Positions 12,168 through 48,894 are shown, counted from the first letter of the stretch. The stretch: DNA of 64,000 nucleotides from Macrostomum lignano (GCA_002269645.1 NIVC01001471.1:186001-250000), one strand, 5' to 3'. A program made the numbers and translations. The notes: generated from the letters alone by a model not told the origin.

Positions 12168-12200
<33 letters not shown>

Positions 12201-12366: not shown

Positions 12367-12409
<43 letters not shown>

Positions 12410-23689: not shown

Positions 23690-23810
23690 GGAAAAGTCAG
23701 TGTTGCATTCTTATTGGCTGAGAACATGGAAGGTGAAATCCCAGATGCTATAAAATGGCTGTAGCAGTCGCCTCCTCCTGCTCAGCAAGTTCTCCGAATC
23801 TGAAGCAAAG
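23690..23810 (+). promoter_or_regulatory. Putative promoter of lectin copy 1 (inverted CCAAT at 23713, TATAAAA at 23749); homologous block upstream of copy at 43404
   Basis: Motifs read directly; sequence aligns with 43281-43403. Confidence 0.55.
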
Positions 23811-24699
23811 ATGTCGACTCTGAGGGCGCTCCTCCTCGCCCTGCTGAGCCTCGCCTGCCTGCGCAGCCTGCAGTCCTGCCAGCCGCCCTACCAGTCCGTG
23901 TCCGGCTTCTGCCTGCTCGTGAACACCACAGCCGCAGTCGGCTGGTGCCAGGCGGCTCGTCTGTGCCAGGCCGTCGGAGGCGAGCTGGTGATGGAGCCGG
24001 CCGCCATCCGGGCAGCTGCGCAGTTCGCCACGGGCTCGGTGATGCTGTGGGTCGGCGTCACCGACATGCTGGAGGAGCGGTTCACCAGCAGGTGAGGCAA
24101 TCAGCATCGAGTATTTCTGCACAGAGCAAATTTGATGCCACCTTTTGCTAAACAAAGAACTTCAAAAATCTCATCCGATGCTCATTAATTAGCCTTCGAT
24201 AAGTACAGATGCTGATTATCTAGATAATATCAGGAGGGTCTCACTGAACTGCTATTTTCATCTTCTCAGGAGCGGCTGGCGCATGGCAAATGGAAGCGAG
24301 TTTGTTGCCCCAAACTCGGACTGGGCATTTGGCTGCCCAAACAACATAGACAGCTCGGATGACCTGCTGGCGCTATTGAGTGGTGCTTTGTGCGACTTGC
24401 GGGAATTTTTCCAAGTCGGCTTCGTCTGCCAGCCCGTGGCGACGCCGAACAGCGGAACCTTCCGTCGGACCAGCTTCCTGCAGCTGGGTGACATCACGCC
24501 CTACTACTGCTACACGGAGGTGCAGTCGGTGCAGCGCAGGCTGCTCTGCGTTCGCCAGTGCGCTGCCCGCTGGGAGTGTCGGGCGGCTCTGTTCAACCGG
24601 GCCGAGTCTCGCTGCCGCATGCTGGACTTCGCCGACGCGAGCGCGGGCGACGCCATCGAGAAGAGCGGCGCTTGGGAGAAGTTCGTCAAGGTCTACTGA
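23811..24699 (+). CDS. Secreted C-type lectin domain + PAN/apple domain protein, copy 1; join(23811..24091,24270..24699), 236 aa
   Basis: Signal-peptide-like start, CQPPYQSVSGFC, WCQAARLC, LWVGVTD, WRMANG, GFVC (CTLD pattern), then a CY..CVRQC..WECRAALFN..C PAN-type cysteine pattern; phase-2 GT-AG intron. Confidence 0.88.
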
Positions 24700-25769
24700 G
24701 ATGAACCCACTGATGAAGAATATTTGAGCAAATAGCAAAAAACTAATTTTACACCAACTAAACACCAACTTTAGTCTCTCTGGTGACTCTCTTTCTGGCT
24801 AGGGAGAAAGTTTGATGCTTGGATGGAAGCATATACGTAGTACCTGTGTGGCAGGTAAGAAAGTTATTGGTAAAAGGCAAAATCAATGCAAATTGACTGA
24901 CACACAGAATAAATACAAAGTAAGCGTTAAAGACCCGCATTGTTGATAGCATGTGTTTGGAACTGATGAAGTTTACAAAATTCCTGGAGCACTGCAGGTC
25001 AGGAAACTATGCTTGCGAGCGAAGAGAAGAAAGTCAGAACTGAGTTTACTTCAGTTCATTACGGCTCATTTGAAGGACATCTTGGCTGTTTACATGTAGG
25101 TTCTTTTGTTGTAGAAAAACTTGCGAGTCCATGCAGCTCAAGTCTCTTGAAAGCGTGGTGTGCTGTTTCCTCTCTCACTAAGAGACTCAAGACAATCAAT
25201 GGAGACGCCTTCCGCTGTTGTCTTGAAGAGAAACAAAGAGAAAGTAGAATGAAAAACGAAGTTGATGGGGTCAAGAAGCTGCTTGAGCAGATCCGCCACG
25301 TTTTCATTGGTGTCCTTGAGCTGAGTTTTCTTCTTTTTCAACTGCCACTGTATGTTGTTGTCTCGACGACTACCATCAAGGAGCGCATGAGTTTGCTGCT
25401 CGACACGTGATCCTGCGTAGCTGAGTCAGTGCTGGAGTGCTTCTCCAGGCAGGGACTTCTTCTTGTGATGAAGTAAAACAGCAGATGAAGCTGGCAAACA
25501 AACAAGTTTCTATCTTTTCCATGATGTGCGCTCGTATTTGGATTTTTCATTCACTTTCAAAATGCAGCACCGCATGTACGAATTCGGACAGATTCTGTCC
25601 GAACTAGAGAGCTGCGCCATGGACAACTGAGGTGGTATCGAATAGAAGGACTCCCGTACTCTCGATTCTCTTTGAAATAAGAAACAGGATTTTCTCGACA
25701 AAATTTGTCTATGGCGAAACCCCGTTCTCGAGAGCATACAAAATGGCTGCTGGCCGCTCAACAGTTTTA

Positions 25770-27127
25770 TTTATTTTGGTCGTAAGCGGCTGAGGACGCG
25801 TAAATACACGCGTCTGAAGACGATTACGACCATAGATAAGTCAAACAAGTGGGGATTGATGTATTTATTACTCAGTTCGTGTCAAGCAAGAGGAAAGTTA
25901 AGATAAAATCCTGCAACGTACTTACCAACGACTTATCCAACCAAAAAGCCACAATGGAAAGATAGTGCACGGCTTGCAAGTGCAACAACGCCTAGGACCA
26001 CGAGTGCGAGTGTTGGAAGTGACGACGTCAGGCAAGTGTTGGAATGACGACGTCAGTCCAAAATGTCAAGGTTGACGTTCAAGCATCTTCGGCCGATACT
26101 GTTCGACCGGAGCTACATATTCATCTGAGTGGTAGTTTCAGCAATTGCAACTTCAAATTCGATGATCAGTGAGTACTGATGAGTACTGAGTGAGTTACTG
26201 AGTTTTCGAGTTACTACTAGAGCACTGACTACTAGACAAAGAGCTCGTTAAAAATGTTCAACTATTTGCTACGTTTGCTTTTCGTAAAATATAAAGTTTG
26301 TGTTGTTGCATTATTGCACGCTGAAAGCCGCCAGCGTGCATTTTTGGCGCATTATTGCACCCTGATTGTCAATTGTCTATGGTAAAATCTCCATTATTTT
26401 GACTCACTTGTTGGCTAGACTATATGATAATGAGTATTCCTGACGACTTACTTGACTTGACTCTGCCGGACATGGATTTTAATCTTGAAGTGCTCATGGT
26501 GGCCGAAGGCGACAAACAACGTGATGGAGTGGTTTCAAGTCGGCATGCGATGATGAACGAGTTGGAGTTTTATTTGCAACTGAATAAAGCGACACCTGAA
26601 AATACTAAAAAGAAGGCTGATTAGATCGTTGGCGTATTCAAGAATTGGCATGAGCAGAAGAAGACTGCTTGGTCAACGAGTGGTGGTCCATCGTTAATGG
26701 TCCTGAAAGATCTCTCGGAGATGACGAAGCAAGATCTGAATTATCTTCTGAAGTACTTCGTTATGGAAGTACGCAATCAGGATGGAGAACGGTTCACTTC
26801 CACCACTCTGAAAGACTTTTTGTCCATGATTCAATGGTACTGGCGCCGTTAACTCCGAGAGTCCTAGCCCTACGAAGATGCGAATCGAGATCTGTGGCGA
26901 ATCGAATAAGGTCACCATTAATTTCGATTAACAATGCTTGTTTTTCGAGAACTTAATGACGAAAGTGCAGTTCTTCGTTCGTTCTTCGTTTCTTACACGT
27001 TATTTCGTTCAAAATGAAATTCTAAAGTATTCGAGCTAATAAATAATTTATTGGCCCGGCCAAATAAATTTCTTTCGCATCAAATAAAGCTTGTCTTAGT
27101 CTATGACCGGGCCTAACTGGGTAATAA
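25770..27127 (+). mobile_element. Crypton-like (tyrosine recombinase, DUF3504/ZMYM-type) remnants
   Basis: 26582-26860 reads NTKKKAD*IVGVFKNW..KQDLNYLLKYFVMEVRNQDGERFTSTTL. The tail SGSFSNCNFKF* ends at 26172. The end motif CTATGACCGGGCCTAACTGGGTAATAA lies at 27101-27127. Confidence 0.65.
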
Positions 27128-28082
27128 ATGTGATTGAAAGCAGCTTTCTGAATTGTACCTAAACACTACAGAAATGTATGTACCTGCGACTGCGTACCTC
27201 AAAAGGTACGGAATGGATTTTTGCTGATAACGAGCACAGTTTCGAAGTGAAGACTATCGGAGTCCATTCAGGCAAATTGAAAAAGTTTTTACACAAGTTT
27301 TTTAGCAATGTACTTTCTTTAATTCAAAAGCATAAATTAGTATTGGCTAATATCTGAATAATGCCGTTAAAAGATTAAATAATCTAACAAGTTTAAATTA
27401 GTTAGAATTGTTTGGCACATTAAGGTTTCACGCCTGGAGCTGGTCAAATAGAGCCAGGGGTCAGCTTTGATGGCAACTACGAGTATACGAGCGTACTTTG
27501 AATTACATGTAGGTATATAATTCCCGTAAAATTTAACATTAAAGTACATTGTTGTTAGGATGTCGATTGACGACTCCGACGGCGTTCTCCTCCTTTTTGC
27601 TGACATCACCGACATGCTGAAGCGCTGAGCTTAATGTATCAATAATTGTGGTTTGTTAGACAATTATAGAGACATTCTGTTTCTCGTAGTGCCTACGGTT
27701 CACGCCCACGATCGTATTGCTTGGCTAATCCCTAAATAAGTCATCAGAAATCGGGAAACCTAAATCATTTTTTACAGTTTTAAAAAATTAGAACTATAGA
27801 TTTACAGTGCAATGCCATGTGGCATTAACTCTGTCAGGGCGATTTGAACACGAAATATAATTTTATTAAAAACTGCTCAAATTGACTCAAAATTGTAAAA
27901 AAGCTAATTCGAATCCAAGAGTATGTGCTACTCGTAAGCAGCAGACGGTCCATTTGCCCATGCACCTGAGCAACATGACCAATCAGAGTCTGCCAAGCTG
28001 CGAGAGGTTAAACACCGGTATAGCAATTTCCATGCGAATGATGAAGCCCGCACAGCTGGAAAGCTGCTGGTTTACCGCAGGG

Positions 28083-28238
28083 ATGTCGACTGCAAGGGCG
28101 CTCATCCTCTCCCTGCTGAGCCTCGCCTGCCTGCGCAGCCTGCAGTCCTGCCAGCCGCCCTACCAGTCCGTGTCCGGCTTCTGCCTGCTCGTGAACACCA
28201 CAGCCGCAGTCGGCTGGTGCCAGGCAGCTCGTCTGTGC
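28083..28238 (+). pseudogene. Lectin-PAN family, 5' half of exon 1 only, truncated by an insertion
   Basis: Near-identical to copy 1 exon 1 from ATG to CGTCTGTGC, then an abrupt switch to unrelated sequence. Confidence 0.85.
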
Positions 28239-28717
28239 TCACGCGTAATATGCACGTGACTGACACTCGTGAAACACGTTTTGTGTCCCTTCTTTACGCG
28301 AATATACGCGTGTAAGAATACGCACAGAATACACGAGTGAGTTACGCGCTCAAAAAGCGCGCTTTACACACATTGAACATGAATAATACGCGCAATAAAC
28401 GGATAGAAAGTTGTCGGGGCAGCGCTGACAGCGCAGACAACAGGAGCCTCGTCGATAGAGTAGGACCCGGGATTAGGCCAGAATTGGGAAAACTTCTCCG
28501 TACTCGATTCAGTGGTTTCTTGACCGGTTCTTTCATATTTCCTATCTGCCGCGCATCACAGGACGGAGTGATTAAATCCAAAACAGGAAAACTGACGCAG
28601 GAGTGCCAGAAAGCACAAACATATAGAATTCGCCTGGCTAAATTCATACTACGAGTATGAGTCTTATAAGCTCAGGTCCTCGTCAAAAAAGGTCCTCACA
28701 GCCCTCAGTTTGCTCAG

Positions 28718-28981
28718 TATGGCGCCCCTGTAGTGTATAATATGGCGCCCCTGTAGTGTATAATATGGCGCCCCTGTAGTGCATAATATGGCGCCCCTAT
28801 AGTGCATAATATGGCGCCCCTGTAGTGTATAATATGGCGCCCCTGCAGTGTATAATATGGCGCCCCTGCAGTGTATAATATGGCGCCCCTGTAGTGTATA
28901 ATATGGCGCCCCTGTAGTGTATAATATGGCGCCCCTGTGGTGTATAATATGGCGCCCCTGTAGTGTATAATATGGCGCCCC
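28718..28981. repeat. 23-bp minisatellite (TATGGCGCCCCTGTAGTGTATAA), about 11.5 copies, ending near a MITE-like TAAATCCGCCTCTG end
   Basis: Direct reading. Confidence 0.92.
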
Positions 28982-29544
28982 ACTCTTGTGGTGAAAATAC
29001 GCCCCCCTTATTTTTTTATTTCTAAATCCGCCTCTGGCGAACAGTGTTTTAAATTAATAGAATAAACAATAGCAATTCAGAGGTCTACTAACAGAGAGGG
29101 TATAGAAAACGCACGATAGATGTATATCAGCCTGAAATTCAGTGAATTGATAAGCCCATTAACAGACAGCTGCTGTAACGGCTTCCGCTGCCTGGATTTC
29201 CTGGTATTTTCAGAATGAATCTAAATAACAAGCCGTAGATCGTTGCTCAGCGTCACATGAGAAGAGACAGATCTGCTTCTTTTATCGTATACCAATCAAT
29301 CGTCATGGAATGTTTTCCTTACATCTCTGCTTCCATTGCTGCTTTTGTGTGCTATAATTTACTGTATTGATTAAAAAGCATTGTAAAACACGGATAATGG
29401 GTATGAAAAAACAACTGAATTTTTAGGTTAGAATTAGAATGGCCCTGTCGAACATAAAAGACTCATTGGAGAATTGCTAAGATGTTAAGGATTACAGGGG
29501 CTGCTGAGAATCCAAGGGTCAATTTCAATTTATCAATTCAATTC

Positions 29545-29950
29545 CGCGTCATGCCATTGAATGTTAAAAATGCGCCTGCAAACAGTTCAACGTCTCATGG
29601 ACATGGTGTTGCGCGGACCTAAATGGAAAGCCTGTCTTGTATATGTAGATGACATTGTAGTCATGGGCAGGTCATTACAAGAGTATAATAAGAACCTTGA
29701 AAAAGTCCTAAAACGTCTTAAAGAGGCTAATGTTCGTTTAAAGCCCAGTAAATGTCTCCTTGCCTCGAAATCCCGGCCATAAATATACTAAGCTATAAAA
29801 TACTCCAGGTGGTATTGCAGTCGACGAAGAGAAGGTACAAGTGATTACTACTTGGCCTCGACCACGAACTGTGAAAGAGGTGCAAAGGTTACTAGGGCTT
29901 GAATCTTACCATCGCAAATTAATACAAAACTTTTCCTCATTAGCCGAAAT
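29545..29950 (+). mobile_element. Gypsy-type reverse transcriptase fragment, frameshifted
   Basis: FRVMP..NAPA / QRLMDMVLRG..CLVYVDDIVV..LKPSKC / AVDEEKVQVITTWPRPRTVKEVQRLLGL. Confidence 0.85.
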
Positions 29951-30399
29951 GTAATTTCGAGTTTTTGGAAAATATGAATTAATGCGTATTTTACCAACCC
30001 AATTCATTATTTGTTTTTGACTCAAATATTGCAATATTGTCACACAGCTTTGATGTCCTGAAATGTAATGAAATGAAGTGAAAAGACTTGAAAAACTTGA
30101 TAAACTTCCAAATACCCGTTGAAAACGAGGGTTAATATTGGGGTTTAATTAACTAATAGCATAAAGGTTAATAAACTTTCAAGCAACAGTAAATTTCATC
30201 ACGCTATTGACGTTTATTAACGTAAATTAACTGACGCCGCTGCTGCGCTGGTGAAATAAATTTCTGCAAATTAACCTCCCGCGAAATCCTTCAGGGAGAA
30301 AATTTACTCCTAAAGGTTAATTTACCTAGCCGGCACCATGCGCGTTCAGCAGGTTAGCTTACTTTGCCAAAGTAAATTTACTTTCTCGTTTCATTTACT

Positions 30400-31465
30400 T
30401 TACAGATGAGTAAATGTACTCCGTCGTTTGATTCACTGTGTTCGATTTGTCATGTAGATCACGAATGACGTCATGTACGTGAATCCCAGAGCGGATTTTG
30501 CTAAATGTAAATTCAATACCGTCAGGAACGGCTCTGTCTCCTGGCCGGCTGCCACATTGCATCTTGGCACAGCGTCGGCGGCATTGGCGGCCTGTGGTAC
30601 AGTGGCACCAGGAGCGCCCCTCTGGGTGGTACCACGATTGCGTGGCGCCAGCTGGTTGCCACTTGTACCTGCTGGTAAGATACTTAAAAACGTCCGAGAA
30701 TGTCCCCTGCGGGATATTCCCGGCGAACTGGCCGACAAAGCCACGGATGGCCGCCATCTTGCGCACGTTCGGCTGAACTCCACGGCGTTTTCTTCTGCGG
30801 TTGATCAGTTACCTGGCCACGGGCATTGCCATCAATACTTCTTTCTACCAGCTGCTTGATCTGCTCCATGATGGGGCCTTCGGCATTTGCAAGGCGTTCG
30901 CGGAGTTCCTGCATCGCGGCTAACGCCTCCTGCTCAGCCTGTTCAGCACTCTCCCTGGCAGCTGCTGCTCGGAGAGTGAATCTGCTCTTGGCGAATTTTT
31001 GGCGAGTTTGGCGAATCTGCTGCTCGACATCTTCCAGCTGCTGCTCGCTGGTGTCTAAGCGGCAAAGTAGGTCACTAATCCGCGCATCCTTAGCTCGCAT
31101 TTCGCCTTTGAGCTCCGCGATGGACGCATCCCGGATACGAAGTTGCCTGTTGAGCTCGACAATCGATGCATCGTCGGTCATGCTGGCGCGAGCAGCACAG
31201 GTGGTCAGGCCAGTACCCTGGTCAGGCCAGTACAGGCAGCTTGTCGGGAGCTCAACGTCGCTGGAGGGAGCGAGCTGAAGCGACCGCAGCCTGTCCGGAT
31301 GATGGTGGCCTCGAAGCGAGTCACTTTTAGGGTGACGATCTTGGCCCGCACCACCTGGACCTTGCTGCCCACTTCAGTTGGCACTGGATCAGGGTGCACA
31401 ATGCGGGATAGTGCGACACTCTCCAGGCGATTATTTGCCACGTATCGAACAATAACGTACAGCAT
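30400..31465 (-). pseudogene. Fragmented gene for a coiled-coil protein with a possible BEN-like C-terminus, probably transposon-borne
   Basis: ORF 30684..31181 is heptad-rich; the shifted frame gives PNVRKMAAIRGFVGQF..FKYLTSRYK; it lies inside the insertion following the truncated lectin. Confidence 0.35.
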
Positions 31466-32438
31466 TGCTCGGTATTAGCTGTAATGCAGTAGTTGAAAGA
31501 GTGTAGTTAACCGCTTTAGGTACATGCGAAACGTCTACATTTATCAGGCTAAATTATGTGATCTAATCTGTGCAACCAAAGGCTACGAAAACTAAGACAG
31601 CAGCAACCATTAACAGCTACAATTACAATCAATGACATCACTGAATGACACTGTGTAAATGGTCGCAATGGAAATAATATCCGCGGCCCGGATATATCGT
31701 AACAGATTACGCTCGTATTAAACATTGCTGATATCCGTCGAAGTACAGTGTAAGTTACGCCAAATTCTAGAAGTATCGTATTTCTATGATTCTACTGTAA
31801 GTAGCATCGATAGTTATTTCGTTACTGTTACTTTATTTGGTACTTTGTTACTGCATATGGACGTGCATAAGACAGTTCATGTGTTCCTTTTGCAACGATC
31901 CCTTGTGAATACGTTATTCCCGGTGTATCCGCTTATAAGCGCCTCTGCCCACCCACTTTTCGGTTGTGTGTAATTGTGAGCGCCTCTTGAACTGATATAC
32001 GAAGGCTTTCGACAAGTGCGTTTCCCGAGTACCTATGTATTTTGTGGTTGATACATGTGTTAAGCATGTTTTGTAGTAGAAAAATTATCGTTGTTTGTAA
32101 TTCTGATGAGTATTTTTTTAGTTGGACAGTAAAGTATTTTTGTACTGTATAGCGTCTAGTGTAATCTAGTCAACAATGAGGTCAATGCATTTTCGTAGTA
32201 ATGATGTTACAGTGTGGTTCGTTAAAGGCATGTATCATATCGTTTTTCATCGTATTTCATATCGCACGCATACCGAACTACTTGTAATCATTCATTCATT
32301 TTAACAATATTCTATATGTAATGCGCTTATGCTCCTTTTGTATTTGTAGATATTTGTCGCCTCGCATGTATTTATTATATTATTTATATTTTATGCACAA
32401 CGCCATTACACGCGTAATTCGTACTGCGTCAGAGACTT

Positions 32439-32553
32439 GGAGGCGAGCTAGCTGGAGATGGAGCCGACCGCCATCCGGGGAAGCTGCGCTGTTCGCCATG
32501 GTGAACCTGTGGGTCGGCGATACCGACATGTTGGACAAGCGACTCACCGGCAG
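32439..32553 (+). pseudogene. Degenerate 3' half of lectin exon 1, with donor site
   Basis: GGAGGCGAGCT..ATGGAGCCG..CCATCCGGG..CTGTGGGTCGGCG..ACCGACATG..CAG|GT aligns to exon 1 of the intact copies with indels. Confidence 0.7.
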
Positions 32554-33155
32554 GTATGGCTTTTAACGTCAACAGTAGGATTTTAATTACAACTGTTATT
32601 GTAAACTTTTTGCAAACATTATTAGGGACTATCAACACAATCCAGCGATCTGTTTTTAGAAAAAAACTTTCGCTGTTCGATAAATTTAGAACAAGGATGA
32701 CATGCTGGCTCTACAAAGTGGTCTCGAGCACCGCAGGCAGGATGAGCGACGTCTGGGCAGGGCAGGCAGAGAAGTAGAGGAGAGAGCGTTGCAGGAGATG
32801 GAGTCCTCACGTGACGCTTCACTCAATTTTCACTCAAAAATCCGACCCACTGGCAGAATTGTTGAATATCTCAACAGTCCGGAAAACTGACGACTTGATT
32901 CTTGTTTAATAAGGTTTGCAACGAGACCAAGGAACACAGCAATATAGTAAGTTAGATTCTGCCGAATTCTATGAGCGTTGTGCTATATCAGCCAATCAGG
33001 ATGAGCGATACGGGTGACAATGAGGAAAGTGTTTCTGAGCCGAATTCAATTGGACATTGGGGTTTCCAATGGAATTTGGATTTAAACAGAAGCCCGATAC
33101 GCTTTCAAGGCTGCAGAGTCTCCTGAAGTTTTTAATAACATTTAACTCTGAAATG

Positions 33156-34043
33156 ATGTCGACACCAAGGGCGCTCCTTCTCGCCCTGCTGAGCCTCGCC
33201 TGCCTGCGCAGCCTGCAGTCCTGCCAGCCGCCCTACCAGTCCGTGTCCGGCTTCTGCCTGCTCGTGAACACCACAGCCGCAGTCGGCTGGTGCCAGGCAG
33301 CTCGTCTGTGCCAGGCCGTCGGAGGCGAGCTGGTGATGGAGCCGGCCGCCATCCGGGCAGCTGCGCCGTTCACCACGGGATCGGTGAACCTGTGGGTCGG
33401 CGTCACCGACATGCTGGAGGAGCGGCTCACCAGCAGGTGAGGCAGTCAGCATCGAGTATAGAGTGTTTCTACCTCAAAGCTAATTTAGCGCCACTTTTTG
33501 CGGAAGAAAAAACTCCAGAAAATCTCATCTGAATGCTCTTTCATTAGTCTTCGATGCGTAAAGATGACTATAGCTTAAATATTATAGCTGATCTGATATT
33601 CTCATCTTCTCAGGAGCGGCTGGCGCATGGCCAATGGAAGCGAATTTTTTGTCCCAAACTCTTACTGGAAATCTGGCTGGCCAGATAATGGAGGCAGCTC
33701 AGATGACATGCTGGCTCTAAGAAAAGGTTTGCTTCACGACTTTGTCTCATCCAATCTGATCGGATTTGTCTGCCAGCCCGTGGCGACGCCGAACAGCGGA
33801 ACCTTCCGTCGGACCAGCTTCCTGCAGCTGGGCGACATCACGCCCTACTACTGCTACACGGAGGTGCAGTCGGTGCAGCGCAGGCTGCTCTGCGTTCGCC
33901 AGTGCGCTGCCCGCTGGGAGTGTCGGGCGGCTCTGTTCAACCGGGCCGAGTCTCGCTGCCGCATGCTGGACTTCGCCGACGCGAGCGCGGGCGACGCCAT
34001 CGAGAAGAGCGGCGCTTGGGAGAAGTTCGTCAAGGTCTACTGA
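33156..34043 (+). CDS. C-type lectin + PAN protein, second intact copy; join(33156..33436,33614..34043), 236 aa (alternative in-frame ATG at 33153)
   Basis: Same exon lengths (281+430) and domain pattern as copy 1. Confidence 0.88.
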
Positions 34044-37000: not shown

Positions 37001-37775
37001 GATGGTCACCAGCTCATGAAACTTCATCCAAGGTTCATGAAACTTGCACTGTTCTATCAGAAATTTTTCGATGACTGTACAGTGGCAAAAAACCTGCTCA
37101 ATGCCAAAAGGATTAAGTACCAGGGTACTTGAAAGCATAACTTTTGCAATGCTAAAATAGAATTTTCGACTATGATTTTCAAAGCAAAAAACCTAAAGAC
37201 TGAATTCTGATTTTGATAAAATTGTTTCTGTGTTCAAATGTAGTGCATGCGCCCTTGTCTGTTTGGGGCTGGCTGGGTTGGCGGGCGTGGCAGGGTCTGG
37301 CCGGCGACCGGGCTTTGCGCGTGCCCCTCCCCAGCCATGCGTCCTGCCCCGTGCTCAGGGCTGGTTGGCTGCGGCCGGGCCGGCTTTGACGCGGGTGCGC
37401 CCCCCCCCAGGCGGGATTTTGATTGGCTGGCCAGTGCGTCCAGTCTATTTATCCTTTCGTGCTCTATTTTGCTCGGCTCAGCCTGTGGGGCCGTCTTCCC
37501 CCCCCCCACCCAGGTCTGTGGTGGTATTTATTAACCCCCCCCCCTCACTTCGTACTGCGACATTGAGAAAAGAATTGTTTTTCTTCTAATAAGAAATTTA
37601 GTTAAAACAATTTTTCAAGTTGTACGACACCACAAATAAATCGACAACGACCCAAAAGGGCAAGCAGAGCAAGCCAAAAGCCAGCTTAAACGCGCATCTG
37701 ATAACCCGGCCACTGGTAAGCCGCCTGCTTGAGTTCAGTCTTTTCTGGGAAGCTTGTTAGGCTGCAGGGAGTTTT

Positions 37776-37880
37776 GGCCAGAGCGTCATAACGCCTGTCA
37801 GTAACAGTGTCACCATTGGCAGAGCGTCACAACGCCTGTCAGTAACAGTATCACCATTGGCAGAGCGTCACAACGCCTGC
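37776..37880. repeat. 41-bp tandem repeat, about 2.5 copies
   Basis: GGCAGAGCGTCACAACGCCTGTCAGTAACAGTATCACCATT. Confidence 0.85.
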
Positions 37881-39599
37881 TGGTACAACCGTATAGTACT
37901 TGGGCTGGGCACCTGAAACGACCCGGGTTACTACACAAAACTTTCATCCCCAGAAATACATGTCAAACTCGACCCCGTTGATTGAAGCAACTCTCACCCC
38001 GTCCCAATCTGTCTCACAGAAAATCTCACATGTCTCAGAAGATTTTCTGTGACCTGTCTTCAGTTTATGACATATGGCGAATGTAAAATGAATAAGAATA
38101 AATTCTATATGCATTTAGTGTCAATGAAAATGTTTCTCATTGTGTTTGTTGCAGACTAAGCCAGGTAATTAAAGCCCCTACCTCGCGTCAGGCGCTTGGC
38201 TAAGTAAAATAAGACGCCTGGCTAAGACTGGAAATATTACGCGACCTTGTTGGTATAGGTCCACTTTCTTCTTCTAGAGAAGAAGTCATAACAATGGCGT
38301 CGCAAGCAATCGTAACTTGACGGTCTGATGTTCAAGCTCGTAATGAGCAAGGATCCGACCAAGTCTGCAGGGGATCCGACTAAATCAGCGGTGGATCCGA
38401 CCAAGTCCACTGGGATCTCTCCAAGCCGTAATGGAGGAGGTTCTCAGAACGGGTCACAGTCCCAAGCAACTCAAAGGGATGCTCAAGCCCAGAGCGCCAC
38501 GATCGGTGGAGAAAAGGTGACGTACTTTGTTAGAACTTGAATCGCTTTCATCAAGTGACAGACTTAAGAATTTCAAGATGATGTGTAATTTCAGATTTCA
38601 GATTTTCAGATTTAGATTTTCGTTCAGAGCCTTTGTGCGTTGCGACAGTGAGACGCTTTTCTCACTGAGCTACTCAGCAATGTCTTCAATCACACGATTG
38701 ACGACTGGGCGAGCATCCAAAACCAGATCTGGTTGACGAGCGGCTCCAACTGCCGCCAATCTCAAGCAGCATAAACACAGAGAGATGCGAAAGTGATGCA
38801 TTTAGTTAATAGTGGCATTATCTTGCAAAATGTTTACGATAAATGTGCTTCTAAGTTGATTTTGATGTACAGGCTGACCCAAAGGGAACTGACAAATTTA
38901 AATTGCTTATTTAGTCACCTATTTTTGGGTCACGCCGTATATAACAAGGCCAGTAAGGGAGTTTCTCAAGATTACACCGGCAATGTTAATTTTACTGGTG
39001 AATATCGTGCACCAGGCTGTTGGAGAAAGCTACAATTACGTTATTGCATCCTGATGAGCTTCCAGTGGTCCTTCTATTAGGCTTTTTTTGTCTGAATTGA
39101 CTGATTGCGCATTCAAAGTCAGCTCGAGAACTTTCAATAGTTTTAAGCACCAAAAAGGGCTCCTCATCCGACCTGGCAATGGCTCCTTTCCCTCAGCTCG
39201 AGTTTTACACAGGAGTGAAAGGGCTGAAGACTGCGGTTTACGAGCAAGCTGAGAGAGAAAACGTGGAGATCAAACTAGTTTAGTTAGCGATTTATACATA
39301 TGAGGTTCTACAAGTGAACGATACGACGCACATTGCTACACGATGAAAGCGGTCTTTCGCGTCCCTGGGATTTCCCTAGGGAATCCCGGAATTTCCCTGC
39401 GATTTATATTGTCCATGGTCGCTTTGAAGCTCAACAAGAAGCAAGACATATATTTGTTGTATATGACTTTTTAAAATCCTACGATTAACATAAACAACGA
39501 TACAACAAGCCGAGAGAAAAAATACAATGCAGCCAATAACAATGAAACTTTATAGGTCACTAATAATGCACTACTGTTGTTCAACGCAACAGATTGTCA

Positions 39600-40400
39600 C
39601 CATGTTTCAATTTAGAATTCTCACTTGTAATAGACATTGAACGTACAGCCGCTGAAGGTTCCATGGAATCCACCTTTGGAATCAGATGAAGCCGTGGTAA
39701 CTGTAGCTGTACATGCGGTTTCAGCAATAGACAGACTGGCATCTTGAGGGCCATTTACTTTCGAAGTAACGTTAGATCTTCGTCTTCGATGGCACTAAAC
39801 CTCTTCATTTCTCCACCATTCTCCAGAAACAGTCTAGCGGCAATCTTCAACATGTCGTTGGCTCTCTTGAAGAGTTGACTGGAGAGGATATCCACTCCAC
39901 GTGACCGAAATAGAAGGCGATGCAATCCGGCCCTGAAACAGCGCAGAGTAGCAGGCTCACCTAGAACCCACCATCAGAACGCCTGATAGAACCATAGCTC
40001 GTACGCGATCCGGATACAGGCGCTCCTCTGAGCACTTTTCAATATCAACATCAATTTTCAGGGACTCCATGGTCGATTGAAATTTTTCCAGAGCCCATTT
40101 CTCTTGCTGACCAGCACTTGGTGGCTCACACGCTTTCTCTACCAGATCCAGGTCACGCATAATAATCTCGATGTTTTCGTTGGTCGTAGATCTGGAGTCC
40201 AGCAGTTCGGAGATCATCGAATTCTCAATCCTCGAGGCGAATCCGGAAGCCATGTCTTCCAGACTGTTCGAGTCCATTTCCATGGCGAATAGAATGTTGT
40301 CGGCTTCCATTCGTGCTGCTATTTCGGCCTTTGTCAGTCCGACGATGTCACTGTATTCAATGTGCAGTAGACCGGTGGGATATGATGAATCGTCCTCCAT
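39600..40400 (-). mobile_element. Crypton-like recombinase remnant, internally deleted
   Basis: ORF 39957..40400, then GLHRLLFRSRGVDILSSQLFKRANDMLKIAARLF and tail GFHGTFSGCTFNVYYK*. Confidence 0.55.
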
Positions 40401-40524
40401 TTTATCGCCAGTGAATGTCTATTAGCGCCCTCTCTGATGGCTCTGGCTCTCGCGTCCCTCTCTTTCCAATTCTGTGGGTTTTGGCCACAGACATAAGAAA
40501 AATCGACATCGGTCATTAATATAT

Positions 40525-40612
40525 TAATATAGTTAGGCTGTTGAGGGCAGAAATGAGCGAAACAGACGAGGCTGATCCGCTCATTTCTGCCCTCAACAGC
40601 CTAACTATATTA
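40525..40612. repeat. Perfect 35-bp inverted repeat with 18-nt spacer
   Basis: TAATATAGTTAGGCTGTTGAGGGCAGAAATGAGCG (40525-40559) is the exact reverse complement of 40578-40612. Confidence 0.95.
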
Positions 40613-40845
40613 GTATTGTAGCCAATCTAAGCCTGCCAACGCAGCGGGCGAGAAATACCATTTCACGCCCGCTGAATCCATTCTATGGTCCAATTCCATT
40701 TGAAGTAAGCTATTGGCTTCATTTCTCGCCCGCTTCTTCTTGACTTTTCTATGGCCTAAGCACTCGAGACCTGTCATATTAAGTCATGTTGAAGTCATGT
40801 TAGAAAGAAAAATCCATCGTGTTTTTCCTTTACTGTTTGTCGAAT

Positions 40846-41240
40846 ATGCTGCGTTATTCTTCAATACGCGAAGACGAAATTAGTAGATTGAGCTCAGATG
40901 AGCTCGATTTCATCACGCATCTCGATCCTCGGGACGATGTCGACAGAATCGGTCAATGGACAGGGCTGACGGATGAGCAAGAGAGGCTAATTGATGAGGA
41001 ACTACGCAATCCTACGCCGGAAGATCACGTTGGAAACCTGTTTCGTGAATTGACCGAAGAAGAAGAAGCTGGCCTACATCATGTGGAGCAAGAAAGTAAA
41101 CGGAAGTCGACGGTTAAGCAAACCGAATTGCATATTCGCAAACTAAAAGTTTCTACGCGCGGAGAATTTACCTGATCACATCGAGAATATGCCAGTGAGG
41201 TATCTCAACTCCTATCTACGCCTGTTCTTCGTTCACTTTA
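40846..41240 (+). mobile_element. Crypton-like recombinase N-terminal fragment
   Basis: LFRELTEEEE..KRKSTVKQTELHIRKLK, then HIENMPVRYLNSYLRLFFVH in a shifted frame. Confidence 0.55.
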
Positions 41241-41589
41241 ACTTTAATCAATCAAACTAAGGTCAGAAGGTCAGACAATCGTTGTCACGCACTGGGACCG
41301 CTGATTATCTATCCATTGCTATGCACTTTTGGTGACAATAACACGCGCGTGGGATTATATCATTATTGCAAGGCAAATTACAAGGAGCAAATTAACGAAA
41401 GCTTACTAAAGGCAGAAGGCCGCATTCACAAATTCTAGATGACTTGTTATTTCTTAGAATCCCAACAGTAAATTCTCCCTTTTGTACCCCAAAATTACAG
41501 TTTACTTCGAGATTCGGGAATTTCTTGTGTTGTAAACTTTCTTGTCTTGTCTTGTCTTGAATTTCTTGTCTTGTCTTGTCTTGTTTTGT

Positions 41590-41860
41590 GTTCGTCCAAG
41601 CGACCTGTTGAGAAGTCGGCCACTCCAGCTGGTAGGCCACATCATCCTCGCCGAGTCGTACTGCCCAGAGCCGGTACAGGAGGCGCTCTTGCTAACGCTG
41701 CAGGCACCCTACCGGCGGGGGCAGGCGCGCATTCGGCGTTTCGTCGACTTCCTGCTGGCCGGCTTCGGATTCGGCTGGCGACGTGGCGTTCATTCGCGAC
41801 CTGGCCTTGAGGCGCGCCCCGTGACGCTAACTGCGTATTATGTTATTGTTGTTAATGTAA
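41590..41860 (+). mobile_element. 3' fragment of an RTE-like non-LTR retrotransposon, preceded by (CTTGT)n
   Basis: LRSRPLQLVGHIILAESYCPEPVQEALLLTL..RRGQARIRRFVDFL resembles post-RT C-termini of RTE-type elements. Confidence 0.55.
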
Positions 41861-43403
41861 CCTGAGCGACATTATTGAGTTTCCTTCCTGAAATGCCAAC
41901 TTGTCGGTGGCTTGGACCCATAATTTATACTATGTTATGCGAATGAATCAAACTCAAGACATTTATATTTTTTGATACTCCGTTACCGGTCAGTGGTAAA
42001 ACACGTAAACAATACAGTCTTCGAATTCAAGGCAAGAATGAGTGCCAATTTCAATTTCTTCAAGGATGTAAAATGTCTTTAGAAAATTGAGTTCCAAAGT
42101 AGTTGCTGCTATTGCTGTTTTCGCCTGGTACTTCCGTGATGTAGGTGCACAGTTCCGTTCGCTTACCTTTTGGATCATGCCTTGGACATTTAAAATGTTA
42201 CAAGGAGTTTAAATTTTACTGTTTTTAATGCCCTAATTAGAACACTCTGGCTTGTTGAGCACACTCCCTGGTGTATTTTTGACAACTATCTATTTTCCAA
42301 ATGTTTCCAAATGGACTCAAGCGATTGTAAGGAGTCAAAGGCAATGCCATGCCCCGCTTCCTTCCTAGTCAAATCAATCGCTAAAACTTTTTTGAGCTCA
42401 CAAAGGAGGACAAATATTGATTTTCTCGCATTGGGTGTGTTTTCTCGCCTCGTATGTTTCAGAGTTATCACAAGTCAGCGATCTGAGAGACTTTTTCAAG
42501 ACACGCACGAGAAAGTTTCACTTCCGGTAGTAATATGTTGTCAGAGCTTCGCTTTCACGGATGTTTAATGGTGACGAACCCAAGGACTGCTAAAGTAAGG
42601 CAGGAGTTTTTTTGTAGTCCTGAGGCTTGCAAAAATCAAAATTTTCGCTTGTTTCAGCCCTCTGCAGCCTGTCAACATTGGCATGGTGCTGCTAGTAGGG
42701 TTTCCACCGGTAGTAGGGCGCCATGCCAGTTCGATTTCTTCAACCTGATTGTTTTGCGTTTCAAGAAAAAGCGCTGCATTCTTTGCTGAAGTTTGCAGAG
42801 ACTCGCATTGGTGAACGCAGATTGCTAGCGTTACAGACAAACCAATCTTAGACATTTATTGTATAGGTGGATTCTAGAGCAGGGGCGCGGAAAAGAAGAA
42901 TTGATGCCAGAAGTTTAAACGCCATATGCAAAATAACGACGTCAAGTTAAACATGAAGAAGCGCAATATCAACTATAAAACTCGAGGGGAGTTGCTGAGA
43001 TGTCAATATTCATGGAAGGTATTGATATTTTCTGAAATGCTGTGACTCTCAGCAGGGTTAAGGTTAGGGTTAGGTTTTGGGTTCAACCATAAAGGTATCG
43101 CCTATCAAGCATAAACGGCTAAAGTGGGAATCGCTAAAATGCTACGGCAAATGATGAAGTTTCTGAGATGTATGCTTTCATGGGGGTTTCTGAAATGTTA
43201 TGACTCGTATAAAAAATTGCTGAGGTGTCCAGGTTTATGAAGACAAAGCGTGTCTGAATGCTGTGGCATTAACAAGCAGTGGAAAAGTCTGTGTTGCATT
43301 CTTATTGGCTGAGAGCATGGCAGATGAAGTTTAAATCCCGATGCTATGAAACGGCTGTAGCCGTCGTCTCCTGCTCAGCAAGTTCTCTGAATTTAAAGCA
43401 AGG

Positions 43404-44411
43404 ATGTCACCTCCGAGGGCGCTCCTCCTCGCCCTGCTGAGCCTCGCCTGCCTGCGCAGCCTGCAGTCCTGCCAGCCGCCCTACCAGTCCGTGTCCGGCT
43501 TCTGCCTGCTCGTGAACACCACAGCCGCAGTCGGCTGGTGCCAGGCAGCTCGTCTGTGCCAGGCCGTCGGAGGCGAGCTGGTGATGGAGCCGGCCGCCAT
43601 CCGGGCAGCTGCGCCGTTCGCCACGGGCTCGGTGATTCTGTGGGTTGGTGTCACCGACTTTCTGGACGAGCAACTGACTAGCAGGTAAGGCAATAAAAAA
43701 TCACTTAAATGTGGAAATCTCAACAAGGATCTAAAAAAATATACTATTTTCCTCAAAATGCGTCAAAGAGCAAGCTGCCAAACTGCGCAGCAATTCAGTT
43801 TAGAAAGTCCTTTTACCTTTCTTGCTGTGCAGTGAATGAAGAAGGACGCTACTTGAAGGAGCATTCACTATAACGATCAGACCATTCAAAAAGCAACTAA
43901 CTCAACTTGGCGAACTGATATTATGTTTTTAGTGGCTCGTGGTTCGAGTTTTTCATTTAACTTAGATTTTCACCTTCTCAGAAGCGGCTGGCGCATGGCA
44001 AATGGAACCGAATTTGTTGCTCCAAACTCTGACTGGCCATTTGGCTGCCCAAACAATAATGAGCACTCGGACGATATGCTGGCGCTATCGGATGGTGCTT
44101 TGTGCGACTTTCGGGAATTTTTCCGAGTCGGCTTCGTCTGCCAGCCCGTGGCGACCCCGAACAGCGGAACCTTCCGTCGGACCAGCTTCCTGCAGCTGGG
44201 CGACATCACGCCCTACTACTGCTACACGGAGCTGCAGTCGGTGCAGCGCAGGCTGCTCTGCGTTCGCCAGTGCGCTGCCCGCTGGGAGTGTCGGGCGGCT
44301 CTGTTCAACCGGGCCGAGTCTCGCTGCCGCATGCTGGACTTCGCCGACGCGAGCGCGGGCGACGCCATCGAGAAGAGCGGCGCATGGGAGAAGTTCGTCA
44401 AGGTCTACTGA
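43404..44411 (+). CDS. C-type lectin + PAN protein, third intact copy; join(43404..43684,43982..44411), 236 aa
   Basis: Same exon lengths and domain pattern; GTAAGG donor and TTCTCAG acceptor. Confidence 0.88.
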
Positions 44412-44519
44412 AGCTCGGAGACCTATTGCAGATCGGGCAGACTCTGGAGAGACACTGAAACACCAGCGCCTCACAAGGCCTTGTCATCGCTAACAAGAAC
44501 AAGCGATTGCCCAAAAAGC

Positions 44520-45200
44520 CTAGTCATTTGAGCGAGAGTCGGATTTTCCTAATCCCAAACTGTTCAGCCAGTTAACTATGGTCGCGCGAAGGCCATGAGT
44601 TTTGAATATTTTTGTGTAAGTGATGAATACCAAAAACTCAAAAATACAATCTCCGATGACATCGCAGAGACGAGCACTGAAAAATGGATTTATTGCATTT
44701 TTCCTTCGTTTAGCTTGGGCTTTTTCTAGGATTTTATCCATATCATAGGCATAGACAAAGCGGATTCCATTTGGCAACAATAAAGCTCTTTTTCACTGGA
44801 GACTTTCCAATGCATTTTGCTTTTATCAAAACGGAAGCCATCAAATCGTCTTCTGGATAAAGCAAAAACTTCAGCATCATTTTTCTTCCTTGACGTGTCG
44901 ACTGATTAGACGAAGAGCTTTTCACAAAGACATTTTTCCTGTCATTAAAGAGGTGGCATGTACTGCTGCTTGCATTCATTTGCACGTGTGGCTGAGCTGG
45001 GAGCTGCAGACGCAGAGTTCAGGCCTTAACTGTCGCGAGCTCGAAGAACAGCTCTTTAGTTGCTAGGGTATTCTTACCTGACGCTACCGATAAAAATTCG
45101 TGTGCGAGGCTGTCCATCTGTGAGCAGTCCGATTGTTTTTGGCGATATTTCGGCTTGATGAAGATTTTAAGACGCTGCTGAAGTTGTTAGAAGCTGAATG
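44520..45200 (-). mobile_element. Possible tyrosine-recombinase (Crypton-like) remnant
   Basis: LPNG..MDKILEKA and FKTHGLRATIVNWLNSLG (H-x-x-R motif); the remainder is degenerate. Confidence 0.35.
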
Positions 45201-45483
45201 TTACGAGCGTATTCATAAAAATGGGCTGTGCTGCTGAGCTTAGAGTTATTATTCCTTTTCTGTAACCGTTGCAGAATATTTTTCAAATTTCTCTAGTTGG
45301 CAAAAGGCCTGAAGCGCTGCTACAAATTTATGAAATTTTGCCGACTATCATGATAGAATCAATGCATGGTAACTATGACTTTTTGTCCTTTACTTTGCTC
45401 CAATTTACTTTTCAATGGAACAGCGAGTTCGATCCGTACTCATATTTTTAACCAGAACTGTTCTTTAGCAAGTATTGAGAGGG

Positions 45484-45626
45484 AGACCAGTCTCCCAGCT
45501 GACATTTCTCAACTGACCAGTCACTCAGCTAACCAGTCACTTAGCCGACCAGTCACTCAGCTGATCAGTCACTCAGCTGACCAGTCTCCCAGCTGACCAG
45601 TCTCCCAGCTGACCAGTCTTCCAGTT
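45484..45626. repeat. 16-bp tandem repeat (GACCAGTCACTCAGCT), about 8 copies
   Basis: Direct reading. Confidence 0.85.
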
Positions 45627-46310
45627 CGGACACCCAGTACGGGATACTTTATCAGTTCACCGAAAGATTTTTGCCAAGGTTTGGAAGGATAAGATCTACG
45701 AGATGGAGAGGACTGCAACGAGGGTTCAGGCGAGCGTTCAAGAGCGCTATGATGAGGCAAAACGATGTTTGCCACCCCTCCACATTGGAGCTCATGTTGT
45801 TCTCCAGAGTCCAGTAACAAAGCGCTGGGAAACTAAAGGGGTAATTGTAGAAGTTGGCAAGCACCAAGACTACCACGTCAAGCTGGCCAGTGGCCGGATC
45901 CTGCGTCGAAACCGCGTATTTATCCGGAAGTGTCTGTCGCAGGAGCAGCTTATTAGCAACAATTCGCCTGTCAAGAATGTTACCAGCCCGCCAGCCAGAG
46001 TTGTACACGCACCGGTGCCCAAGCCGACAACTACGAATACTGTCCCATGGAGAAGTCAACGATTGAACAAAGGGGTTCCAGGACGCAGGTTTCGATACAA
46101 GAAGTTCGGAGAACTCGAGACCTCGTGACGAGGAGGGAAGGGGAAGAGAATATTACTTGAATGCGAGAAACTGTTACGCTCGTAAAAGGGGAGATGTTTG
46201 ATTAACGCATACTCATCATTATGTTCTTTCTATGGCCTAAAGTATAAGTGCACTAGTATAAGTGCTCGGCCGGCCCGCGACAATAAAGAAAATATAATAA
46301 CCTTGTCACA
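45625..46310 (+). mobile_element. Gypsy LTR retrotransposon 3' end: integrase C-terminus, polypurine tract and start of 3' LTR
   Basis: FGHPVRDTL..LPPLHIGAHVVLQ..RWETKGVIVE..GRILRRNRVFIR*; PPT AAAAGGGGAGA (46184-46194) directly followed by TG at 46195. Confidence 0.8.
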
Positions 46311-47588
46311 AACTACAAGCTGAATAGCTACAAGGTACAAGTTACAAGCAAGAGTGTTTCACAAGTCTGCTTGTAGATTTTAGCCAAAAAATGTACAAGT
46401 ATAACAAGCTTGTAGCTATTCACTTTATCGTCTATGGTACAAGTGTCTACGTCCCTGAGGAGGCAGAGAAAGCATCTCGAAGCAAAAAATAGTCAATACG
46501 TCTTTCTTCCACGCTGGCTTTTTACATTCGCTTATTCGCCGAAGATGCCTCTCTCTGCAAGTGAGAAAACGCTTCTGTTAGAGAAGATACGCGAAGTCAA
46601 AAGAACATTAGATGAAATTCACGCGCTCTTTGAATGTGCGCCGGCACTTGGGTTCGACGGAACCGTTCCTCTCCTCGTCAGACGAGTCAAATAACGTACT
46701 TATCTAAGCGCACTAATAATTGAAGTCAAAAAGAACTCGCGTTTAGTGAGTGAGGTTAGATCATGGATGAATAATATATCTGGATCGCCAGAAGCTCGAT
46801 TTTTTTGGTCCTAGCCATAGACAAGCACCAGCATCACAAGAAGCTCAGAATGCTTTAGAATTCCTTGCACTGACCCATGTAAATAATTTTTGTCTACATG
46901 TGAAAGTACGGCGTTTTGAGCTTCTTGTGATGCTGGTGCCTGTCTATGGTAGTTTATGAAACGAAATTCACGTGTAACATGTCACTAGTCGCACTTGTAG
47001 CCACTACAAGTCGTATATGAAACAACCCCCAGGCCTCGGCTTCGCCTAGGCCAAGTAACGAGTCCTCTGCTTTTGCTTCAGACCAAAGAAATAAGTAAAC
47101 GGAAATAACTTTCATATATAAAAATTTTTAATTTATAAAAATTATACCTAAAATTTTTTCTAATTATTCGCAAACTATTAACATTCGCACAACGCTTTCC
47201 CGTTTTCTATGGGCGGAAAAGCTTTTGGACCAGCAGGAACTTGAATGCATGCGGCTAGGCTAGCTAGATAAGCGAAGAACCATGTGTCCATATCGACTTT
47301 ACAGAATTCTTTCGGTTATGAAAGCGAACGTCAGAGTTATTCTTATAGGATCCCCTTTACCTCACCTGTAACCCTACAGGTTACAGGCGAACTTGAGAAT
47401 AAGATGGCGTGCAGACAATAACAAATATGCAACCGTCTGCATGACAGCAACATAATTCTAACAGCACAGCTCGCTTTAGAGGCCTTTGATCTGTTAAATG
47501 AGCCTGCTTTGCTTAGTTTAGAAATTCGCAAACGCAAATTCTATGTTATTTCTAAAATTTTACATGGTGAGAAGTGTGAATTACGCCG

Positions 47589-47700
47589 GTGCATTAGGGC
47601 ATTGTACCGATACATTAGTGCAATACACCGATGCATTAGGACATTTCACGGATGCATTAGGACATTGCACCGATGCATTAGGGCATTACACCGGTGCGTT
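47589..47700. repeat. 21-bp tandem repeat (GCATTAGGGCATTGTACCGAT), about 5 copies
   Basis: Direct reading. Confidence 0.85.
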
Positions 47701-48310
47701 AAAACACTGCACTGAAATTACGACCTCACAAATGTAACTTCTCGTGCATAAAATGTCCGACAATACGGAGCAGTTGAAATTTTCAAACAAGCGCTGCGTA
47801 ACTATACAATACAGAGCCAATAATTTTGCATGCTGCTGATACTACACTTTGGTGAAGAAAATGTGACGTACGCTCGTACTTTGTTAGAACTTAAATCGCT
47901 TTCATCGAGTGACAGACTTTACGAGCTAGAACTTCATGATGATGATGTGTAAAAAAATAATATTTTTGCTGCAATTGTGCTAATTTCGAGTACCAAAGAT
48001 ATGGTCATGGTCCCACCTACGCTCGGCTCGTAATTGTACCTGCACCAGCGGTGAGCACCGAAACTACGCGTACACCCTTAGAAAGCTGCGACTTCCTGAT
48101 TTCAATCGTTTAAAGATGAGAAAAAAGTGACTGAAATTTGTGAATTTGCTCACAGCCAAGCAGTATGCGGTCCAATGGTGGCCTATGTGAACCGACGACA
48201 GCCTCCACTGAACAATCAGAGTTTGCCAAGTTGCGAACGAGTTAAATAAAGCAATATCCATGCAATTGATGAAGCCCACACAGCTGGAAAACCGATGATT
48301 TACCGCAAGG

Positions 48311-48585
48311 ATGTCGACTCCGAGGGCGCTCCTCCTCGCCTTGCTGAGCCTCGCCTGCCTGCGCAGCCTGCAGTCCTGCCAGCCGCCCTACCAGTCCGTG
48401 TCCGGCTTCTGCCTGCTCGTGAACACCACAGCCGCAGTCGGCTGGTGCCAGGCAGCTCGTCTGTGTCAGGCCGTCGGAGGCGAGCTGGTGATGTAGCCGG
48501 CCGCCATCCGGGCAGCTGCGCCGTTCGCCACGGTGAAGCTGTGGGTCGGCGTCACCGACATGCTGGAGGAGCGGCTCGCTAGCGG
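48311..48585 (+). pseudogene. Lectin-PAN family exon 1 pseudogene; exon 2 not found
   Basis: Near-identical exon 1 with GAG>TAG at 48494-48496, a small deletion near 48532 and a degraded donor. Confidence 0.88.
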
Positions 48586-48894
48586 GTTCGTTCAGAACCT
48601 GAAGTAAAAACGAGCCTGTATTTTAATTATATATCCAGCTTTGAAATGCACAGTTTATGTGACTTATATCGCTTTTGACGATTGAAATAGGCTTTGTTCA
48701 AACTAAGCGAGGCTGCGCATGCTCCCCATATAATCCGGCACAAGGGACGTAACAAAAACATGGCCATAGCCGTTCAAGTCATGGACTATAAAAGGAGAAT
48801 CAAAATGAGACCCAGTCTATAAATACGAGAACGATTCCGTCAGCTTGTTTCTGTTTCAATTTTGTGCATATTTCAACTTAAATTGTACACTGCA

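Follow-up and report, generated by a model that had tools for sequence, protein, structure and literature searches.

Coding blocks probably kept alike by gene conversion on either side of an island of divergence in a tandem CTLD-PAN gene cluster of Macrostomum lignano

A 64,000-nt stretch of the Macrostomum lignano genome (GCA_002269645.1 NIVC01001471.1:186001-250000; one strand, called the window below, with positions counted from its first letter) carries three intact tandem genes, A, B and C, whose products are composed of a signal peptide, a C-type-lectin-like domain (CTLD) and a PAN/apple domain. The three copies are nearly identical in two coding blocks and strongly diverged in the block between them. 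We consider it probable, at roughly three chances in four, that the cluster consists of old paralogues in tandem and that short-tract interlocus gene conversion keeps the two coding blocks homogeneous, the centre being an unconverted island of divergence. A sequence-only reading of the same DNA had seen in this centre a hypervariable, diversifying ligand-binding cassette; the anomaly is instead the near-identity of the constant blocks.

Synonymous divergence (dS) is far lower in the constant blocks than elsewhere in the gene, the flanks are unalignable, phylogenetic signal is incongruent along the gene, and the homogenisation is independent of selection since it is also seen in two pseudogenes, psi1 and psi2, which provide the strongest control. 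The contrast in dS, the identity retained in these relics and the mosaic tree signal together therefore point to homogenisation of the constant parts by gene conversion, a proposal of the sequence-only reading that is borne out here.

Gene structure and the distribution of differences

Genes A (23811..24699, with exon 1 at 23811-24091, an intron at 24092-24269 and exon 2 at 24270-24699; modelled from its translation and GT-AG junctions), B (33156..34043; exon 1 33156-33436, intron 33437-33613, exon 2 33614-34043) and C (43404..44411; exon 1 43404-43684, intron 43685-43981, exon 2 43982-44411) all lie on the plus strand. Each includes exons of 281 and 430 nt separated by a GT-AG intron (178 nt in A, 177 nt in B and 297 nt in C) and encodes a product of 236 amino acids (aa); exon lengths and product size are exactly those counted earlier. 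All paralogue statistics given below concern these three intact copies, all inside the 64-kb window.

The 138 nt which follow the ATG codon of exon 2, referred to here as the cassette, differ at 47 positions between A and B, 19 between A and C and 50 between B and C. In the following 276 nt, up to the stop codon, the corresponding numbers are 1, 4 and 3. The A-B and A-C values are identical to those of the sequence-only reading. Among the three copies 23 of the 46 cassette residues differ, and the cassette of B is the most divergent. Exon 1 had been described as mostly near-identical, and a single variable site was found among A, B and C between nt 25 and 211 of the coding sequence (CDS). Of 83 polymorphic CDS columns, 72 fall within nt 212-435 and the other 11 outside. 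This divergent block takes in the final 70 nt of exon 1 and straddles the intron.

The 5′ homogenised block (CDS nt 25-211; 23835..24021 in A, 33180-33366 in B and 43428-43614 in C) encodes the end of the signal peptide, beta0, beta1, alpha1 and alpha2. The unhomogenised central block (CDS nt 212-435 together with the intron; 24022..24423 in A, 33367-33767 in B and 43615-44135 in C) encodes residues 71-145, which include the end of alpha2, beta2, the long loop, beta3 and beta4. The 3′ homogenised block (CDS nt 436-711; 24424..24699 in A, 33768-34043 in B and 44136-44411 in C) encodes beta5, the linker and the entire PAN domain. All are on the plus strand.

Outside the coding sequence similarity is lost abruptly. 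In the 3′ flanks of A, B and C homology ends 2-3 nt past the stop codon, and that of B to the other copies begins at the ATG. On the plus strand a promoter-proximal block with CCAAT-like and TATA-like motifs is common to A (23686..23810) and C (43277-43403) only, at 87% identity; the region upstream of B is unrelated to it. The introns of A and B are 80% identical and that of C is unalignable, no better than shuffled sequence. The earlier statement that introns and 3′ untranslated regions diverge thus stands for the 3′ flanks and for intron C; it does not for the A-B intron pair.

Gapped alignment suggests possible compensated indels of 1-2 nt, leaving short stretches out of frame, in the cassette at 24340-24350 (A) versus 44052-44062 (C) and at 24376-24395 (A) versus 33720-33739 (B), so that some apparent substitutions may be indel pairs. 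Long alternative-frame or antisense open reading frames (ORFs) of 115-163 aa cross the GC-rich constant blocks of every copy (44002-44493 on the plus strand; 24373-24768, 44085-44474 and 23748-24155 on the minus strand). They are most simply viewed as a by-product of a GC content at third codon positions (GC3) of about 0.9.

Divergence statistics and the mosaic history of the copies

Nonsynonymous divergence (dN) and dS were estimated by the Nei-Gojobori method. In the constant blocks dS is 0.04-0.05, compared with 0.74 (A-B), 0.23 (A-C) and 0.84 (B-C) in the cassette; across the unhomogenised central block (CDS nt 212-435) it is 0.30-0.76. Codons that specify the same amino acid provide a similar picture: 4-5 of about 160 differ in the constant parts versus 6-9 of 30-41 in the cassette (Fisher p=9e-6 for A-B, 0.011 for A-C and 1.2e-4 for B-C). 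Clustering of the differences far exceeds chance, the longest identical runs reaching 151-210 nt (p<=0.002 if differences were placed uniformly). The identical blocks have a GC3 of 0.84-0.91, compared with 0.49-0.65 for the cassette part (nt 283-435) and 0.70-0.83 for the FCH gene nearby; introns and flanks are 37-47% GC. The GC3 contrast fits GC-biased conversion.

The affinities of the copies switch along the gene. The promoter groups A with C, the tail of exon 1 and the intron group A with B, and the cassette again groups A with C. Counting the odd copy out at each site, C is distinct at 10 and B at 3 sites in nt 212-282, whereas C is distinct at 9 and B at 37 in nt 283-435 (Fisher p=2.4e-4).

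Relics of exon 1

Beside the three intact genes there are three relics of exon 1, which represent two decayed copies, both on the plus strand. psi2 (48311..48586) has an in-frame TAG at codon 62, a 6-nt deletion and an altered splice donor, and lacks a downstream exon 2. psi1 is in two pieces 4.2 kb apart: the 5′ piece (28083..28238) includes only CDS nt 1-156 before breaking off into unrelated sequence, and the 3′ piece (32447..32554) corresponds to CDS nt ~170-282 and is 81-87% identical to the other copies. The 6-nt deletion of psi2 is also present in the 3′ piece of psi1.

psi2 is 98% identical to A, B and C over nt 25-211, and between nt 25 and 156 all five copies of exon 1, pseudogenes included, are 98-100% identical, psi1 and psi2 matching the genes at 98-99%. 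Their upstream 110 nt form three unrelated classes, about 40% identical to one another: one formed by A and C, one by psi1 and psi2 (81% identity; 27976-28082 versus 48209-48310) and one by B alone. A hidden Markov model of the family, compared with all six frames of the 64 kb, detected no further member and no orphan cassette or exon-2 fragment.

Between the two pieces of psi1 (28239-32446) lie a minisatellite of 23-nt units (28718-28981) and, on the minus strand, an ORF whose product resembles a coiled coil (30684-31181). Clear terminal repeats were sought in these 4.2 kb and none were found.

Protein fold and the position of the Ca2+/sugar site

The CTLD and PAN architecture proposed from the sequence is supported by structure prediction and by the wider family. 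AlphaFold2 models made with the family alignment reach a predicted local distance difference test score (pLDDT) of 91.5 for A and 90.1 for B, the cassette of B scoring 85-91. Foldseek retrieves the CTLDs of Mincle, DC-SIGN(R), CD23 and the mannose receptor with a probability of 1.0 and a template modelling (TM) score, normalised to the target, of 0.6-0.78. The predicted CTLD fold has two helices, a beta core and a long-loop region, and the PAN region is predicted as a beta-alpha-beta fold (pLDDT 88-97) whose cysteines C174, C187, C191, C197 and C209 are invariant or nearly so in the family alignment. Direct sequence comparison gives weak matches. The window proteins score 20.7-21.2 bits against Pfam PAN_1 (cut-off 21.4, E ~3e-4; 21.2 for A), only B matches Pfam Lectin_C (15.2 bits versus a gathering cut-off of 22.6), with no match for A or C, and sequence matches to Mincle and DEC-205 in the PDB are weak (E ~0.03-0.06).

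In the AlphaFold2 model the long-loop region occupies residues 100-125, beta3 126-130, beta4 133-137 and beta5 143-149. The variable stretch, residues 100-145, lies in the long-loop region, beta3 and beta4, in agreement with the sequence-only reading, which had placed it in the long loop and beta4. The upper lobe of a CTLD (long loop, beta3 and beta4) is the usual ligand-contact surface. The middle block is thus likely to encode the binding surface.

The label "lectin" is unproven, since none of the three copies retains the Ca2+/carbohydrate motifs. The Glu position of the EPN motif is Cys in A and C and Trp in B (EPN becoming CPN or WPD), and WND is replaced by LCD in A and C and by LHD in B. 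As judged from these residues, the proteins do not belong to the classical Ca2+-dependent C-type lectins, which carry EPN/QPD and WND, and they presumably bind something other than sugar through the classical Ca2+ site. The canonical inner disulfide between the Cys of the beta3 "DC" and a Cys after beta4 is also missing: "DC" reads DD[L/M] in A, B, C and their closest relatives, and the partner Cys is absent.

The number of cysteines in the mature protein is even in every copy (12 in A, 10 in B and 12 in C). In the alignment C116 occupies the Glu position of EPN and C135 the Asn position of WND; A and C have Cys at both, B has Trp and His. Even cysteine counts and this covarying pair therefore suggest a copy-specific disulfide, and a putative Cys116-Cys135 bond may replace the Ca2+ site in A and C. 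The covarying codons 116 and 135 are listed for the gene A region at 24156-24158 and 24357-24359.

The wider CTLD-PAN family

An exhaustive representative search returned 159 relatives, many of them about 240 aa long and aligning end to end, with 45-50% identity for the best. They stem from transcriptome and metagenome assemblies and from Macrostomum lignano itself, which provides the sole named relative (UniRef A0A1I8HX01, P0002, residues 461-672). In this chimeric "guanylate cyclase" model the cyclase catalytic domain is interrupted midway by a complete CTLD-PAN unit, which is probably a gene nested in an intron and annotated as exons. Two relatives, P0154 and P0009, encode the protein without introns on transcript-like contigs of 2-3 kb.

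Family members have in common their length, domain order and Cys framework. Among 26 aligned members, 20 match Lectin_C (best 9e-13) and 18 match PAN_1, both at E<=0.01. The clade of the window proteins and their nearest relatives have lost both the canonical cysteine of the beta3 "DC" and the EPN glutamate, which most distant members retain. The CTLD-PAN family is uncharacterised and lineage-restricted.

Over 24 distant members the column entropy of the "constant" parts is 2.07-2.30, versus 2.53 for the cassette. Since the "constant" parts are almost as variable as the cassette among distant members, long-term protein constraint cannot explain their local identity. Near-identical distant pairs are inconsistent with one another: in P0004/P0152 two of three changes lie in the cassette, and in P0020/P0153 the changes are evenly spread. 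Word-indexed protein searches with the full protein, the mature protein or the family alignment gave nothing useful, an exact look-up found the window proteins absent from the protein collection, and an exact 24-mer from the most conserved block of exon 1 had no match in metagenome contigs.

Conversion, escape from conversion and alternative explanations

The history that we favour would be as follows. The three intact genes and two decayed copies would form an old tandem cluster, set in animal DNA rich in repeats. Nt 25-211 and 436-711 would be held at 98-100% identity in every copy by short-tract interlocus (non-allelic) gene conversion, while nt 212-435 and the intron would no longer be converted across all copies, exposing the older, mosaic divergence of the paralogues. 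The outcome would be a small set of proteins that share a PAN "handle" and a CTLD core, both constant, and differ in their binding faces. The island might persist because conversions which overwrite the binding face of a copy are selected against, as in the model of Teshima and Innan, and sequence divergence itself could help by blocking heteroduplex formation. Judged from three copies, selection of this kind is no more than plausible; as to whether it is needed to maintain the island, we find the arguments evenly balanced.

Several points weigh against this history. A Sawyer/GENECONV-type permutation of the polymorphic columns, a check that had been suggested with the sequence-only reading, was not significant (p=0.14, 1.0 and 0.058); its power is low with three sequences that all have the same homogenised blocks, so that pair-specific tracts cannot be told apart. 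Homology ends at the start and stop codons more sharply than random tract ends would, and an additional assumption is therefore needed, namely that tracts are halted where the flanks have diverged. Part of the GC3 contrast could stem from differences in amino acids or codon usage. A dN/dS below 1 lends no support to selection on the island, and the sample is three intact copies.

Active diversification of the 138-nt cassette by positive selection on the ligand-binding loop, which would furnish a variable lectin repertoire for immunity or recognition, seems to us unlikely. It would account for the replacement of half the cassette residues on the long loop, beta3 and beta4, for differences spread almost evenly over codon positions (14:14:19), for a cassette GC3 under the coding norm of the genome and for the possible small compensated indels, and both A and B fold confidently. 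However, cassette dN/dS is 0.43 (A-B), 0.48 (A-C) and 0.41 (B-C), below 1 at p ~0.03 for A-B and B-C, and dS is elevated equally, synonymous sites being as diverged as replacement sites. The cassettes of A and C are 86% identical, yet their introns cannot be aligned; the cassette therefore evolves no faster than neutral DNA. The 64 kb hold three variants only, and these lack the Ca2+/sugar motif. The roles in immunity or mucus biology suggested in the sequence-only reading are speculative. Neutral escape, in which conversion is inefficient beside a fast-evolving, indel-rich intron and mismatches then block it without any selection on binding, is a possibility that we entertain with considerable doubt. 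The divergent block does straddle the intron and takes in residues of the exon-1 tail that make no ligand contact, intron C differs in both length and sequence, and dN/dS is again below 1, but divergence does not peak at the intron. The first 17 nt after the splice acceptor are invariant among copies, A-B differences peak 106-145 nt downstream of the intron, every pair suddenly ceases to differ at nt 436, and the A-B exon-1 tail is just 8% diverged.

The remaining alternatives fare worse against the same data. That cross-mapped paralogue reads made similar blocks artificially identical during assembly or polishing might be suspected in so repeat-rich a window; it is very improbable, as the constant blocks retain private differences (nt 144, 456, 501, 532 and 684), the relics retain their own stop codon and deletion, identity is confined to the CDS with sharp ends, and polishing cannot yield a long-term GC3 contrast between blocks. 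Purifying selection together with codon bias, without conversion, could draw on the high coding GC3 of the genome (0.70-0.83 in the neighbouring gene) and on a PAN domain that could be strongly constrained. This explanation is largely refuted: synonymous sites are near-identical too, non-functional relics have the same identity and the same regions vary freely in the wider family. Least credible of all is programmed diversification, either by donor-templated replacement of the cassette in the style of chicken immunoglobulin genes or variable lymphocyte receptors, or by retroelement-guided mutagenesis of the CTLD in the style of diversity-generating retroelements (DGRs). The CTLD fold is a classic DGR target, and a reverse-transcriptase ORF is present at 60439-60954. 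This ORF, though, the only one of its kind, is part of a DIRS-like element that carries a tyrosine recombinase and lies 12 kb away, the 64-kb window holds no orphan cassette or exon-2 fragment that might act as donor, and the cassette substitutions have no adenine bias, with transitions about as frequent as transversions.

Comparison with known systems

The sequence-only reading had not recognised the arrangement as a described system. At the level of mechanism, a divergence peak in converting paralogues has already been described: it is the signature of a region protected from conversion, as in exon 5 of the human red/green opsins, in RHD/RHCE and in the Teshima-Innan model (PMC3924837), and the mosaic divergence of the tandem triplicate HMA4 of Arabidopsis halleri has been modelled by variable conversion rates (bioRxiv 10.1101/2025.10.29.685298). 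As in the opsins and RHD/RHCE, the tandem paralogues of the window are mostly near-identical, with a short internal divergence at the specificity-determining part. In contrast to those two-gene systems, the window holds three genes and relics, known from sequence alone, with fully diverged flanks and one fully diverged intron, and only coding blocks are converted. HMA4 also has three tandem copies, variation of the effective conversion rate within the gene and mosaic divergence. Its copies, however, are recent duplicates with similar flanks, whereas those of the window are old and appear to be converted in blocks of ~190 and 276 nt.

Vertebrate immune receptors provide a further comparison. 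The Ly49/KLR receptors of the natural killer complex include a CTLD without a Ca2+/sugar site. A ruminant CEACAM1 paralogue is an example of escape from concerted evolution in an immune receptor family (PMC7042247). Both groups resemble the window cluster in that the genes are clustered, conversion homogenises one part and the ligand-binding domain differs; unlike it, they encode membrane receptors of vertebrates for which ligands and positive selection have been demonstrated. The window protein is secreted and PAN-bearing, and no dN/dS exceeds 1.

Variable recognition families of invertebrates include the hypervariable C-type lectins Rlec of prawn (PMC7536079), Sp185/333 of sea urchin (PMC1988830) and the FREPs of snails (PMC12074976). 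They too are clustered, small, two-exon secreted genes with a conserved leader or scaffold and a variable region. They differ in having tens of members, variability that is based on repeats or elements, and expression that is induced in immune responses, compared with three variants and ordinary substitution in the window cluster. This cluster is a clean case of a known evolutionary pattern rather than a new system of diversification; judged by the evidence so far, it is the ordinary outcome of well-understood processes.

As such it offers a compact, internally controlled case of conversion versus divergence, in which two pseudogene relics serve as neutral controls and the conversion tracts are bounded exactly by coding sequence. 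It also draws attention to an uncharacterised secreted CTLD-PAN family whose Ca2+/sugar site is replaced in a copy-specific manner in the window clade. Should the family prove large, with the same layout of constant and variable parts, it would become a candidate for a repertoire of recognition proteins in animals about whose immunity and mucus biology little is known. A stronger proposal, which we regard as quite improbable, is that of a genome-wide flatworm family with uniform PAN handle and CTLD core in which the upper lobe is exchanged or selected for diversity. If true, it would imply a germline, or even somatically, variable repertoire for recognition of ligands other than sugar, comparable to FREPs or Sp185/333, whose specificity would be tuned by remodelling the former Ca2+ site copy by copy, through a disulfide in A and C and through Trp/His in B.

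Surroundings of the cluster

The window is repeat-rich animal DNA with many minisatellites of 22-23 and 45-48 nt. Arrays of 22-23-nt period are unusually numerous (6444-7025, 8143-9071, 10562-11523, 28718-28981, 52692-53507 and 55622-57249). Two of them, 8143-9071 and 10562-11523, show a relatedness of about 70%, and a single satellite is repeated at 52692-53546 and 55622-57249. An inverted repeat of 232 nt and 98% identity (49330-49561 / 58384-58614) flanks a satellite-rich block of about 9 kb; it could mark the ends of a large mobile element or result from a palindromic rearrangement. Scans of the window with Rfam and for tRNAs gave no matches.

The neighbouring FCH/F-BAR gene (11635-13702, plus strand, possibly reaching 15565; Pfam FCH 37 bits) probably carries in its first intron a (CTGT)n microsatellite (12135-12474). 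Transposon remnants flank the cluster: a MULE transposase domain at 1105-1737 (minus strand, 51 bits) and a fragment of a retroviral-type (rve) integrase at 21415-21918 (plus strand). At 60439-63590 on the plus strand, a reverse-transcriptase fragment is followed by a tyrosine-recombinase (Phage_integrase-type) ORF, a combination typical of DIRS-like retroelements, and between the two lies a perfect array of 9.7 copies of a 25-nt unit (61865-62107).

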